From: Trichosphaerium sp. ATCC 40318
Taxonomy: Eukaryota; Protista; Tubulinea
Reading direction: 5' to 3'
Assembly: GCA_038496445.1 (NCBI GenBank)
Contig: JALMLS010000103.1
Span: 128,733 to 192,732, forward strand
DNA length: 64,000 nucleotides
Both the position numbers and the translations under genes were made by a program. Positions 21,041 to 31,275 of the stretch are shown here, in pieces (positions within the stretch are counted from its first letter, which is position 1; each line of letters opens with the position of its first letter). The notes beneath the pieces were generated by a model that did not search any database, was not told the origin of the DNA, and was given only the letters and a program-made list of their open reading frames with translations.

Positions 21041-21976
21041 ATGAATACTCTCATTTTACTTGCGCTGGCTTGCGTTATCGCTGTAACTACAGCACAATGG
21101 AACCCACGGCATCCTGGTTGGACAGACAGTTATTCTCGAGGTGGTAGATGCTGGTGTCGTTCTAGTAACTTCGATCACGACCTAGACGACATTACAAAAG
21201 TTTGGTTCGTTATCAACGGCGTAAGAAGAAACATCAGAACAATCTGTGAAGAACTCGAGAAGCACCCAAACTACGCACCATTCAGGGATGGTACCGACCC
21301 ACCTTACAACGATATTCAATGCGGTAACGGTCCACCAAACACTGCCGCTGATGAAACAGGGTGTCCTGGAAGAACCGATCTAGGACCTAGCGGATGTAAC
21401 AATATTGGTGTAAAATGGGATGTCGCTTGGCTCAGAGGGCGTCCAATCTTCGGCGGCGGTAGTACCCCTCCACCACCAACTGGTAATACATTTATTATCC
21501 GTAAAGGAAATGCAAATGGGTTCGCTCTTGATGGCGGTAATGGCGCATCTAACAACCAAAATGTAAAGCTTTGGACGTACCGCAGATCAAACGTAAACCA
21601 ACAATTTGAACAAATCTCCAGAAGCGGCGGTTTTGTTTCGTTCAAGAAAAAGAACACAAATCATTGTTTAGATGGTGGTTCTGGAGGACGTAGAGGACAA
21701 AATTTGAAGTTGAATCCTTGCGGTACCAATAACCAAAATCAACACTGGAGGAAGGTTAGTGGTCGTTACTTTTTTTCTTTTTTTTTTCTTGAAAGGTTCA
21801 TCTTTTTAATTTTTTTTAAGGTGAATGTTGGCGGTGGTAAAACAAGACTTCAGAAGAGGAACGCCGGTGGATTTTCTATTGATGGAAACAACGGTGGTGC
21901 AAGAAACCAAAATGTCTACTTGTGGAGCTCATCCAACTCAAACGGAAATCAACAATGGATCTTAGAAAGCGTATAA
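21041..21976 (+). CDS. Secreted protein: signal peptide, Cys-rich domain, Pro linker and ricin-B lectin domain; probable 66-nt intron at 21755-21820
   Basis: Hydrophobic N-terminus, then WTDSYSRGGRCWC...YNDIQCGNGP. Three QxW-type repeats (NQQF, NQHW, NQQW). The GT...AG T-rich segment interrupts the lectin repeat. Confidence 0.85.
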   Translation: MNTLILLALACVIAVTTAQWNPRHPGWTDSYSRGGRCWCRSSNFDHDLDDITKVWFVINGVRRNIRTICEELEKHPNYAPFRDGTDPPYNDIQCGNGPPNTAADETGCPGRTDLGPSGCNNIGVKWDVAWLRGRPIFGGGSTPPPPTGNTFIIRKGNANGFALDGGNGASNNQNVKLWTYRRSNVNQQFEQISRSGGFVSFKKKNTNHCLDGGSGGRRGQNLKLNPCGTNNQNQHWRKVSGRYFFSFFFLERFIFLIFFKVNVGGGKTRLQKRNAGGFSIDGNNGGARNQNVYLWSSSNSNGNQQWILESV

Positions 21977-26005: not shown

Positions 26006-29000
26006 ATGGAACCTAAGCGCAATAGTAAAGTGGTTGTATCTGACGATGCATCGAATCCAATACACGTTCCAGAACTAGCTTGTAAGATATTTCAGTATTG
26101 TACCAACGATACTCAACAAGCCTATCCCGTACTACTGTATGTTCAGAATACGCCATTTATTTCATTATTAACACAACTTAGAGACATTTTAATAAAATAT
26201 CAAAAGACCCACGCCTTACGACATGGTTCGATTTACCTGGCCGCATAGAAGCCGTAGAGGATTTTACAGCAATCAAATTCGTTGAGAACGCCGAAAAGTC
26301 ACAAGCTCTCTTTAAGGGTTATAACAACACTTTATCGAAGCATGTAGAGCCACTTGTAGATGCAGGCCCAGTTCTAGAAGCAGCACGTGAATGGAGAATG
26401 CAGTATGTCACCTTTAAAAAAAACCTCTTATTTCCCGCTTCAAACTCATTTTCAAAGCTTCTCAGGCGCCCCTGTCAAAGCCAAGAACCTTGGATACGAA
26501 CATCTAGGTCTTGTTGATAAGGACGACAATGTGCTTTGTGTTTTAAAACCCTTGCCATTACCAGAATCTACTATTGCAGCTTTTGCTGCATTAACAAGTG
26601 ACTTGAGATACTATCCAGACTTGTTTCGTTACAGATTTGAAGAAGTAGATATTAATAAGAGTCTCGTGTTTATGTATAGGAATATAGCAGAGAAGGCTTA
26701 CAGGTTTTATATACAAGTTAACTTCAAAAAGTGCGTCACCACAAAAACACGTGGAGAAGAAAACAACTTTCCAAAAAAAAAAAGTTAATGTTGTTTGTTC
26801 CTAGGTTCAAAGAACTGTTTGAAAGTTCTGATGATATGGATTGTGATGAAGAGGAGCGTGATGATCAACGGCAAAGTATATTCAAGCATATTGGTGTATT
26901 TGTTGAAGCCAAGGGGACACAAGATAAGGAAATGAAAACTGTACGTCATAGCTCTTTCTTTATTCTCAGTTTTGTTCAAAAAATTGATTGCTTCTCTTAG
27001 AATTATCACAAAGTTGTATTTGGTCCTAAAAAGGGTCGTCCTGCATTAATTTCAGGGACAGATATGTTAGTACCATACGAGACTGCTAAGTTAATGATGA
27101 AATTACGTAAGTTACAAAAGTCTGAAGAAATTTACGTCAAATTGCATGATTCTCTCAGAGAAGCATTGTTGAACAACCAGTTTGCAAAGGTAGAATCTTC
27201 AGTCTATGGTTCAATTTGGTTTATTCTAACGACTTGATTTCAGGGTGAAAAGTTCGCTTATCCATTAGTGCAAAAGTATACAGTTCCTGAATTGAACAGT
27301 GGTAACCTTGACTTTCTAAAAGGTGCATATTCTTTTTTTGAATCATTTAATTCTCATCACTTAAACTTGTTTTTGCTTTTTAGGTGAAGATGCGATAATG
27401 TTGACTACCTTAAACCGCCTCAAACTGAAGGTAACTGTAGCACCTATAGTAGAAATAATTAAAAAACACCCAAGACCTACACATGTTGGTATGTATTGTG
27501 CGTTACATGCAGATCAAAAGATTGTACTGCAAAATGTATATAATGACGTGACATACAACAACACAACAATAAAATGTCACAACAACACAACAACAAAGTG
27601 ACACAACAACACAACAAGCTGACGGCAAAATGTACAAAGTACAATTGTAACAAAAATTAACACACAGCCATTAGAAATATGTACACATTGTGTCTAAACA
27701 TGTGCAGTAAAAGCTCACAATGGTCTGAAAATCAGAAAGTGTGAAAATATTACTCCTGTGTCGTCACAGACATTAAAAACACTGCACAGTAGGCAAGACT
27801 TATTCGCAAATCCAGAAAATAACAAAATCTAATATTTATTTGTAGACAGCTTACATAGTATTTCTAACTGAAAAATCACACACAGCTTGGTTACGATGAC
27901 ATACATAATAATAAATACAATTTTTCTATTAAATATTTTACTAGCATGCTGTGTGATGAACAGAGTACACCTGATTTCTTCTTCTGAAAAACTCGTTATT
28001 GAAAAAAAAAAATTATCAAATTACGCACAATGCACTTGAGTAAATGCCCCACTAATGCTGCGTCCACAATTGTCTCATGTTCATTAGTGTACAAGTGAGT
28101 GTGAACAAGAGGTTCTGGTAACCCATACAATTGATGTGTGTTTGCGTAGTATTGTAGTGCTAGCTCATCATCAAGTTGTTCAAGCTCTTCTTCCTTTTTT
28201 TTCTTTCTTGATTGTTGCTCCATGCGCATTTGTGCAGCGTGAGCGTGCTAAACTAGTTAGTGAAGGCTTGTAACAATTACACTACCTTTTTTTGGCGTTT
28301 TATGCGGTTTTGGAATTGTTTAACATCCTAATTGCATTTAACAAGCAAAAAAAAACACGTGATTGTTTGGTCTACAAAATTAAGCACGAAAATTGTGATA
28401 ACGTTTACCTCCTCACACTTGCTAGTAAATTTGCGTTTGGAACGCTATATAATCATTAAAATTACTGTACGTTTGGTAAAACTTACTGTTCGGACAGCGA
28501 TGACATTATTGATGTCGTCTACGTCCTACTCGTATTAGTACTAACTATTAAACCAAAAAAAACCACGTGGTACGTTTTTTCTTCCCAAAATGTAGCCTTT
28601 TCCGCTGAACTAATCAAATTAGCATTATCTTTGTGTGCGGTGTACCTTTGAGGATAGGAGTGCAGCCTAAAATTACATGTGAGTGAAAACTACCAAAACG
28701 CATAAACTCAAACGTACGTCTTTTTTTTCTGGCTTGTCTGGTGTGTGGATTGATTTTTCTTGTTCAAGGTTTGAAAACAAGTTTGGAGAGTAAACTAATC
28801 AGCGTTACACCCATCTTGAAAATTACATACTTGCTTGTTTGACCTCACGTTCAGGTGTAGACAAAAGGTAATTGTATTCCGCTAACTCCTCTAAAGTGAA
28901 ATTAAAACGCAGGTAGGTTACACAAAGACATACTAGGTGGACTGTTTTTCCACTGTTTTTGTGATGCCAAGTTTTTTAATTCTTCCAGCGCACTATTATA

Positions 29001-31275
29001 TTGCTCCATTTGCTTCAAACGTGCTTGAATGTTGCTAGAACCCAGGGACGCTCTGATTTTTGCTTCATCCACCTGACGTTTACTTTTAATGCTATTTTGT
29101 AGCTTCGTAGCCTATAACATTGAGATGCAAACAAAAAACTCTCTTGTACCAGCTGCTTCAACTGAATGTTGGTCCTCAGGTCTTTACCATGGCCGTCTGT
29201 GTGAGGAATGTTATTTCAAATGTAGCACAAATAAACGTACAGCGGCTTTGTTTACACCACGTTTTGCTTAGGCAAATTACATCTTCATTATTTACTTGAG
29301 GACACCTGTGTTGTCTACCATTCCGTTTGAACCTCATATCACTCTTAACAAGATGACAAATGGTACATATATGGCCTCTATTATTGCGCAATGGTATAGG
29401 ATCAACTGGATAACCTGCTGGTCTAGGTGGATCAGGAGGTACGTGTGTCATTGTTTAATAAACTAAATGTATTTATTTTTCCATCACAAAATCACATATG
29501 GCAACAGAAAAAGCTAATTATATGTTAGGTTTGGCTGCCGCAGTAGGTGGTCAAAGCTTTGCTAGAAAGCTTTTTGGAGCATCTGCTGGAAAGACAAAAT
29601 ACTGGCTCACAAAATTTGTAGATCCCACCTTTCATAGCAACAAAAATGGGGGGCTTCGCACAACAAAGTTTACTCCAGGTAGATTTTTTTTTTGAGTTTA
29701 GTTAATTGTCGTTTAGAGCAAGAAAAAAATGTGTGGGATGTTGTACTTTTTTTACACAGTGTGGACCCCCAACTGACGTTGATTGAGTATGCCACGGTAA
29801 TCAACGAATTAATTGTGCCATATAAAATCTCTAGAGCATGGATATCACGGAGATTTATTGCTATGGGGTGGACTTGGAAAGTATGAACATATAAATTTTT
29901 TGATATTTTTTTATTTATTTTTTTGCAGGTTGTGGAGCACAAGCAAATTCAAAAATACACTCCAGAAAATATGTTACACTATAACAGGTTTCTTTCTTTT
30001 GTATTGTCAGTGTCTCCATCACAGTTAAAGTTTGCAGACGAGACACACTTTGTTTCTAAAAGTTTGTATTTTTTTTTTTAATTTTTTTTTTTCACTTTTT
30101 TTTTAGGCAACTATCGAAAATATGGCCGAGGCCCTTGTGGCCATAAAGTAGTAGTTATTAATGAACCTATTCTAAGTAAGTCCGCTAACCTAACTATATT
30201 GACGTCACTTACTGCAGATGTACGTTTTTATCCCAACAATCGTTTTTTCTCAAATTTCTATTAAAAAAATTATATAGGTTCCAGTGCTTGGTATGTATCA
30301 TAAACAGAAGAACACACAGCATGATTGGGCGTCTTTTGTTTACTATGCACTAAAAAATGATTATTTGGTGGCCGGAGATATTTTGGTATGTGATAATGCC
30401 CCTATTCACTGTGCCGACAAAGTACTAGTACTAGTAACAGAGGCTTGTGAATCAAAAAATGTGAAATTATTATTACTACCAACTTATTCACCGGAGCTAA
30501 ACCCTTGTGAACTTGTATTCGGAACAGTAAAAAATCACATCCGTTATTACAGAGGAAAAGAGCCTTTAGATGTAGAAGTAATGATGGCATTGTCAAGAAT
30601 TTCAAAAACAAAACTTAAAAACTTTTATAAAAAATGTCGTGGTGGTGTAGAGCTTGAATAAATTTTGGCCTGTACTTATTAAAGTAACTTCATTAAACAG
30701 CAAACTTGTTCTTTTTATTGAGTACTATTAATAGATCTTGCCATACTGTGCACTTGTCTACTGTACATTTTGCCGTCAGCTTGTTGTGTTGTTGTGTCAC
30801 TTTGTTGTTGTGTTGTTGTGACATTTTATTGTTGTGTTGTTGTATGTCACGTCATTATGTACATTTTGCAGTACAATCTTTTGATCTGCATGTAACGCAC
30901 AATAGTACAATACTAGTTACTCGCTTTTTTTCTTTATTTCTTCTTTTGACTCTTTTGTAGGCAGCAAATTCCACAAGCCTGCTTATACAGGCCAAGAAGA
31001 GGATTATAAAATCGTTGAAATGTTCTTGGAAGAACTTGAATTGGAAGAAACTAATTTCTTTTGGCTTAAAGCAATGCCCAAAAAACTTATGTTAATACAC
31101 GCAAAAGTAAGGCTGTTTGATGATGAGACTTTTCAAACCTTCAATCAAACTTATAGAGCACATCCAATACTTATCGCTACAATCATTGATGAAACATTAA
31201 TTTAAATAGAGGGAAATAAACTATTACAAAATGCCAGAATTGATCCAGACTATCAAGAAAAAAGATTATCGATAA
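26006..31275 (+). CDS. Uncharacterised multi-exon protein with a possible F-box-like N-terminus; one intron (27489-30960) carries the transposon
   Basis: Frame is preserved across the large intron: ...PRPTHVG|gtatgta...tttgtag|SKFHKPAYTGQEEDYKIVEMFLE. 3' end is either 31205 or 31275. Confidence 0.6.
27496..27636 (+). repeat. Left TIR with three internal ACAACAACACAACAA direct repeats
   Basis: Reverse complement of 30762-30902. Confidence 0.95.
27941..29451 (-). CDS. Transposon-borne orphan gene of about 10 exons: CxxC...HxC motif, coiled coil and basic segments
   Basis: Chain of GT-AG introns joins MTHVPPDPP...HICTICH...HRCPQ, ATKLQNSIKSKRQ..., RSKRKFTSKCEE, DVKQFQNRIKRQKK and HAHAAQMRMEQQSRKKKK. 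Two junctions need a 1-base correction in A-runs. Confidence 0.7.
29498..30661 (+). CDS. IS630/Tc1-like DD38E transposase with 4 introns, apparently intact
   Basis: Spliced frame contains KFADETHF, LVCDNAPIH and LPTYSPELNPCE.VFG..K, with 38 residues between the second D and the E. Confidence 0.9.
30762..30902 (-). repeat. Right TIR
   Basis: Reverse complement of 27496-27636. Confidence 0.95.

Follow-up and report, generated by a model that had tools for sequence, protein, structure and literature searches.

A two-gene IS630-like transposon from Trichosphaerium and its relatives with a Cys/His-domain partner gene

We analyzed a stretch of 64,000 nucleotides from Trichosphaerium sp. ATCC 40318 (contig JALMLS010000103.1, positions 128,733 to 192,732; termed the window in the following, with position 1 as its first letter), which harbors a DNA transposon of 3,407 bp at 27496–30902 with two genes between inverted ends. 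The plus strand encodes a transposase, and the minus strand encodes, head-to-head with it, a second protein termed ORF2 after its open reading frame (ORF). According to our best reading the element is young and belongs to a widespread clade of two-gene, IS630-like transposons of eukaryotes; the pairing recurs in many eukaryotes known from environmental DNA. The linkage of both genes in relatives establishes that the element is part of a clade characterized by two genes inside inverted ends and that the partner gene has accompanied this group of transposases for a long time. With a probability of about 0.6, we consider the element autonomous and recently inserted, a cut-and-paste transposon from the IS630 branch whose zinc-finger partner serves as a cofactor.

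Searches with individual ORF2 exons gave no family and, consequently, the DNA around relatives of the transposase was fetched, yielding 88 loci (L001–L088) which were oriented with the transposase on the plus strand; queries for the external databases were single exons or database relatives. Several of these loci contained an ORF on the opposite strand just upstream of the transposase with an ORF2-like CxxCH...HxC arrangement. The pattern C..CH.{6,34}H.{1,3}C was found 23 times on the opposite strand versus once on the transposase strand, and all matches to a profile of the domain (E ≤ 0.01) in this set were located upstream of the transposase on the opposite strand, corresponding to about 15–17 distinct metagenomic elements. 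In four loci (L030, L088, L009 and L015) both genes are enclosed by inverted repeats with TA flanks, resulting in elements of 2.3–3.9 kb. The termini of the relatives are similar to those of the window element (TA|TTGTGCG, TTGTGCCG, TTACCGTG and TTGCCGTT, of the types TTGTGC.., TTACCG.. and TTGCCG..), and TA flanks were also observed at L030, L088, L001 and L009. Reciprocal searches starting from the domain led back to the transposase: the gene of protein P0063 is arranged head-to-head with a DDE_3 gene of 333 amino acids at a distance of 111 bp, P0058 is likewise head-to-head with a transposase, and the P0084/P0087 group is tail-to-tail with one. Every informative contig held an adjoining DDE_3 transposase, the remaining contigs being too short to tell; domain gene and transposase are paired on this protein side in L089, L103 and L101. 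Within the clade, the transposase typically comprises about 325–335 residues with a winged-helix and a DDE_3 domain, and the partner is a basic protein of about 200–350 residues, in which an N-terminal Cys/His domain is followed by charged helical or coiled-coil segments; its gene usually lies head-to-head with the transposase gene across a short spacer. The zinc-finger gene of the P0084/P0087 lineage, whose arrangement with the DDE_3 transposase is tail-to-tail, shows a long N-terminal extension of about 100–190 residues (L101:4087–6513, L102:323–2557).

The shared domain was delineated by alignments and by a profile built without the window. In ORF2 it spans 29192–29367 of the minus strand, with intron 1 inside it, and retains all eight putative ligands (C29, C32, H33, H49, C51, C60, C66 and H72), whose alignment columns are invariant or almost invariant; it is probably a two-zinc domain. 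The order of its elements is C-x2-C-H, a basic loop, H-x-C, C, C(-P-T) and G-H(-P-E), followed by charged helices, and typical members read C-x2-C-H ... H-x-C ... C ... C-P-T-x-Y-x-x-G-H-P-E. Alignment of 17 longer relatives revealed invariant C, C, H, C, C, C, P, T and H positions and another nearly invariant H. Among 2,078 six-frame segments of the window the exon 1 segment of ORF2 was ranked first by the leave-window-out profile (E = 5e-4), and the spliced ORF2 protein reached a modest score of 19.8 bits (E = 6e-5 at the same database size). A second match in the window, a 'TCTKCH' segment at about 430 on the minus strand, was rejected as a chance match antisense to a leucine-rich repeat (LRR) gene; an LRR-type ORF is located at 209–739 on the plus strand.

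Among 1.84 billion representative proteins the domain profile matched only 31, all between 63 and 308 residues long, and those which were looked up are unnamed or annotated as 'hypothetical protein'. Pfam searches with 14 domain sequences and nine full-length relatives gave chance matches only, as did the comparison of the profile with the PDB sequences, where cytochrome-c CxxCH motifs were hit. When the domain model was compared by Foldseek with PDB and with the AlphaFold clusters, no match at E<1 was obtained. The AlphaFold model of the domain has a predicted local distance difference test score (pLDDT) of 69 when modeled alone and of 71–89 inside the full-length protein. In the model of full-length P0063 the N-terminus is disordered and precedes the zinc domain, which is followed by a helical middle part, an acidic linker, again disordered, and a long C-terminal helix modeled with confidence. 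One database protein, P0080 (195 residues), contains two tandem copies of the new Cys/His domain. Furthermore, the partner ORFs of P0066, P0069, P0071, P0075 and P0083 break into intron-like sequence right after ...KYLKG, which suggests a conserved intron about two codons from the first intron of ORF2 (R70|Y71).

ORF2 itself extends over 27891–29451 on the minus strand and encodes 352 residues in 12 exons (29451–29241, 29196–29150, 29111–28934, 28890–28831, 28794–28718, 28666–28646, 28609–28574, 28525–28487, 28444–28409, 28327–28286, 28247–28029 and 27983–27891). The model is based on GT..AG introns, the open frame and joints in transcript contigs (see below): each intron conforms to GT..AG and the 352 codons are read without interruption, and on the plus strand of this region all frames contain stops. 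The 81-nt intron at 28328–28408 and the stop in the last exon are the least certain parts of the model. In a transcript of a sibling copy, four single-base indels were found in the last exon (27921, 27953, 27957 and 27960; compared over window positions 27876–27983), suggesting that the extreme C-terminus or the chosen stop codon is not conserved; either the tail and stop differ among copies or that particular sibling is decaying. The predicted product is basic (pI, isoelectric point, 9.6), rich in K, L, S, E and Q, and exhibits K/R clusters and long charged stretches. Its kinship to the partner genes becomes visible through the motif and profile approach only. Pfam gave chance matches but no family for any ORF2 exon, an ESM Atlas feature search with ORF2 exon 1 and P0063 returned nothing above 0.9, a word-indexed search with exon 11 (73 residues, the largest C-terminal exon) found no homologue, and direct tblastn of ORF2 against the fetched loci reached E values of about 0.5–20 only, at the zinc motif. 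An earlier first-pass annotation of the window had described ORF2 as an orphan gene of about ten exons at 27941–29451 with CxxC...HxC and K/R-rich segments and without a Myb motif. Its start at 29451, both sequence features and the missing Myb match (Pfam, ORF2 exons) are borne out by our data; the exon number and the end had to be revised to 12 exons and 27891, and the term orphan has to be abandoned, as the N-terminal domain is common to the partners in about 15–17 elements and to 31 database proteins.

The other gene between the inverted ends encodes an IS630-type DDE transposase of 324 residues (29498–30661, plus strand), which was modeled in five exons (29498–29678, 29717–29880, 29929–30061, 30107–30219 and 30278–30661) and identified by means of Pfam, NCBIfam and the transcript joints. 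The four introns are all GT..AG and 38–58 nt long, and the frame of 324 codons is uninterrupted; the host protist is characterized by very short introns. The motifs FADETHF (D152), VCDNAPIH (D236) and SPELNPCE (E270) provide the catalytic triad, with 83 residues between the two aspartates and 33 residues between the second aspartate and the glutamate. The last exon matches DDE_3 of Pfam at 3e-13 and the IS630 family of NCBIfam at 3.7e-13. Three intron-free metagenomic relatives (P0096, P0097 and P0101) display HTH_33 plus DDE_3 and reach 101–102 bits over nearly the full length of the NCBIfam IS630 model, whose cut-off is 100 bits. A profile of the C-terminal half of the transposase matched Sleeping Beauty at just 2e-4 and SETMAR/mariner at 9e-4, whereas the NCBIfam IS630 model scores about 1e-29; therefore, judged by profile similarity, the enzyme appears to be IS630-like rather than a typical Tc1 or mariner transposase. 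A scan of viral contigs with the transposase yielded just weak relatives, located at contig ends.

The element is flanked by TA target-site duplications, read off the sequence at 27494–27495 and 30903–30904, and bounded by terminal inverted repeats (TIRs) of 141 bp. The left TIR (27496–27636, plus strand) begins with TTGTGCGTTACATGCAG and, in a base-by-base comparison, is identical to the reverse complement of the right TIR (30762–30902, minus strand) at 140 of 141 positions, the sole mismatch being position 44. The similarity ends abruptly past 141 bp; the 154 nt at 96% reported by the repeat finder comprise, in addition to the TIR, the TA and a few positions past the repeat that match by chance. 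Within the 64-kb window, the terminal 22-mer is restricted to the two ends, with 0 chance matches expected. Each TIR contains three tandem 24-nt subrepeats, which form one direct-repeat family per end (left TIR ACAACAACACAACAA..., 27555–27626, plus strand; right TIR 30781–30852, minus strand); those in the left TIR are candidate protein-binding sites. The start codons of the two genes, at 29451 and 29498, are separated by a spacer of 46 bp (29452–29497), presumably a bidirectional control region. Since the inverted ends differ at one of 141 positions and neither reading frame is broken, the element looks young and recently inserted. The TA duplication, the TIRs, the DDE_3/IS630-type transposase and the family-typical triad spacing place it in the IS630/Tc1/mariner superfamily. 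Thus, the first-pass annotation was right in recognizing near-perfect 141-bp TIRs, the TA duplication, an intact four-intron transposase with FADE, CDNAPIH and SPELNPCE motifs, a distance of 46 bp between head-to-head ATGs and, in sum, a young two-gene element of the IS630/Tc1 superfamily; its assignment as DD38E was a miscount, the spacing of 33 residues being of the DD33/34E type.

Transcript data were available from four small public runs of one organism, whose contigs are 90–100% identical to the element. The run type is not on record; the runs were taken as RNA because of adapter remnants and exact intron joints. In these contigs, joints confirm introns 1, 2 and 4 of the transposase model, and the same holds for the minus-strand introns of ORF2 at 27984–28028 and 28526–28573 as well as for those at 28610–28645 and 28667–28717, which flank the 21-nt micro-exon. 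Contigs of a sibling copy, about 92–95% identical, cover ORF2 and the transposase in the same arrangement. Comparison with the siblings, in which 40 of 64 differences were listed and to which more than one sibling contig contributes, revealed that 13 of 18 listed exonic differences in ORF2 are synonymous (P = 2e-5; 24% expected), along with 11 of 16 in the transposase (P = 3e-4). Three single-base deletions of a sibling at 29138–29142 are inside an ORF2 intron. In the window copy neither gene is broken, and both are spliced, transcribed and subject to purifying selection. The splicing of both genes and the retention of ORF2 in sibling copies, both raised with the first-pass annotation, are confirmed.

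Furthermore, sibling-copy RNA contigs of 1.2–1.3 kb unveiled a long plus-strand transcript, which is antisense to ORF2 and runs on into the spliced transposase exons. According to the joints in these contigs, the region 28868–29528 holds three plus-strand GT..AG introns (28868–28916, 29201–29271 and 29439–29528), whose splice sites are canonical in the window copy; the last one excises both start codons. This leader is non-coding, with stop codons in all frames, and could represent read-through, regulation or a substrate for silencing. Its upstream exons were considered as an extension of the transposase. Since the leader has stops in every frame and the intron-free relatives of the transposase start within about 12 residues of the ATG in the window, this possibility was rejected.

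With bacterial IS630 and Tc1-like DD34E elements the transposon has in common the TA duplication, TIRs, a helix-turn-helix plus DDE_3 transposase of about 330 residues and a D..D..E triad with about 33–34 residues before the glutamate. In contrast to these elements, which encode one protein, the present clade adds a second conserved gene, and spliceosomal introns in both genes as well as the long 141-bp TIRs with internal subrepeats are further differences. With PIF/Harbinger elements the transposon shares the two genes inside TIRs, the second one for a small and probably DNA-binding protein. The Myb-like protein of Harbinger directs its transposase to the nucleus and recruits it to the transposon ends, which serves as a model of how the present pair may act. 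However, PIF/Harbinger elements use DDE_Tnp_4, a 3-bp duplication and a Myb/SANT partner, whereas DDE_3 and TA are found here and Pfam gave no Myb match in the ORF2 exons or relatives; on these grounds membership in PIF/Harbinger was ruled out.

The ciliate TBE and Tec elements are IS630/Tc1/mariner-superfamily elements with extra ORFs as well, and TBE carries a zinc-finger protein (PMC7325037). Both have three ORFs, one of which is a site-specific recombinase in Tec (PMC7325037). For comparison, only two genes fit between the TIRs here, and Pfam gave no recombinase match among the ORF2 exons and relatives scanned; the element was thus set apart from TBE and Tec by comparison with their descriptions. 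Intruder (DD38E) belongs to the same superfamily and is an animal family of narrow taxonomic range (PMC7731502); membership was ruled out by its 38-residue D–E spacing versus 33 here. In reviews of the superfamily, TBE and Tec of ciliates are the sole members listed with several ORFs (PMC7325037), and cross-kingdom surveys of IS630/Tc1 mention no such partner (PMC11544213). A description of the family was not found in searchable papers, a search outside of which Repbase and Dfam lie; to this extent the earlier suggestion of a possibly undescribed family is upheld.

In the mechanism which we propose, the zinc-finger protein would be a cofactor that the transposase needs or from which it strongly benefits. 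It could bind the subterminal repeats of the element or chromatin or, alternatively, carry the transposase into the nucleus and onto the transposon ends, in resemblance to the Myb-like protein of PIF/Harbinger elements, and the short central spacer would serve as bidirectional control region co-expressing both genes. That the pairing persists across transposases only 35–46% identical and in two gene orientations points to a role which is hard for the element to lose. We give close to even chances that the partner is a zinc-dependent nucleic-acid- or chromatin-binding subunit assisting transposition; with regard to the transposase's own helix-turn-helix, this role would not be simple end recognition.

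Several observations weigh against the cofactor interpretation or narrow its basis. The transposase keeps its own helix-turn-helix and may therefore not need help in DNA binding, and the evidence for a cofactor role consists of persistent linkage and analogy. About nine related loci with enough upstream DNA are without the zinc-finger gene, and two of them (L001 and L052) bear a different second gene. The partner proteins are barely alignable outside the domain of about 45 residues, and ORF2 is a divergent member with CKQSRYGH versus the typical CPTxYxxGHPE, so that CPT and GHPE are degenerate. Furthermore, the unrecorded run type leaves adapters and exact intron joints as the basis for the RNA status, and the selection test covers 40 of the 64 differences, to which more than one sibling contributed. 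The tree of the transposases, built from 120 columns and 68 rows, is hardly resolved and, therefore, neither a single nor multiple origins of the pairing can be claimed.

Linkage and selection would look the same if the conserved partner acted not as a cofactor but as a regulator, either repressing transposition or countering silencing by the host, as VANC does for VANDAL Mutator-like elements. The DNA-binding region of the transposase itself fits such a role, and so does the fast divergence of the partner proteins outside the zinc domain, which is expected in a conflict with the host. Moreover, sense and antisense spliced transcripts overlap over ORF2, a setting in which small-RNA silencing is likely. 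However, genes for self-restraint are hard to maintain across transposases as dissimilar as those of the clade, and the Pfam and PDB-sequence searches unveiled no similarity to a known silencing-suppressor or repressor domain. We consider a regulator unlikely, yet a serious competitor of the cofactor.

Far less credible is the view of ORF2 as passive cargo of this copy, either captured from the host in a single event or an orphan restricted to the lineage. The missing Pfam matches of the ORF2 exons and the lack of a word-sharing homologue for the largest C-terminal exon would suit it. The same domain, however, stands beside related transposases and inside TIRs in about 15–17 independent elements, and a sibling about 92–95% identical retains ORF2 in the same place with synonymous-biased change. 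The capture, which the first-pass annotation had kept in view, is thus already contradicted by the linkage data, including the reciprocal P0063 locus. We attach still less credence to the idea that ORF2 is not a gene and that one long plus-strand transcript exists, with the upstream exons as leader of the transposase mRNA. It draws on the 1.2–1.3 kb contigs, in which plus-strand GT..AG introns of the ORF2 region are joined to transposase exons. Against it stand the stops of this leader in all frames, the 12 minus-strand exons that thread in frame, the minus-strand introns in the RNA, the position of the sibling differences at minus-strand third codon positions and the conservation of the encoded domain.

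Some further observations concern the surroundings of the element and its relatives. The element seems to be placed within an intron of a plus-strand host gene (window 27380–27495 and 30905–31100), with a donor ...AAACTGAAG|GTAACTG near 27430 and an acceptor TTTTGTAG|GCAGC near 30961; the frame of the host gene reopens downstream of the element, and the intron would measure about 123 nt without it. An ORF of 311 residues at 21041–21973 resembles ricin-B/beta-trefoil lectin domains in Atlas features (scores 0.88), which is regarded as a lead only. Among the fetched loci, L001:3181–6712 represents a complete 3.5-kb TA-flanked IS630-like metagenomic element with 58-nt TIRs. Its second gene is divergent, non-zinc-finger and common to L052 (L052:357–602; 29% over 82 residues, E = 8e-7), and the transposases of L001 and L052 group with that of L064 (Shimodaira–Hasegawa-like approximate likelihood ratio test, SH-aLRT, 91).

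The IS630/Tc1/mariner superfamily provides the textbook examples of transposons with a single protein, and this simplicity made them genetic tools such as Sleeping Beauty, Mos1 and Himar1. A deep and widespread branch which keeps a second gene would mean that the mode of action or the control is different in part of the superfamily. Going beyond the cofactor reading, we suggest, tentatively and with more doubt than confidence, that the clade may be an obligate two-protein system with an unclassified two-zinc domain in its second subunit, that is, the IS630/Tc1/mariner counterpart of PIF/Harbinger, of which the intact and expressed copy described here would be a possibly active example. The catalogue of domains would be extended by a new zinc-binding family, and the annotation of protist genomes and metagenomes would gain, where the partner genes are now 'hypothetical proteins' or uncalled. 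As the window copy is intact and expressed, it is a possible starting point for a transposition assay.

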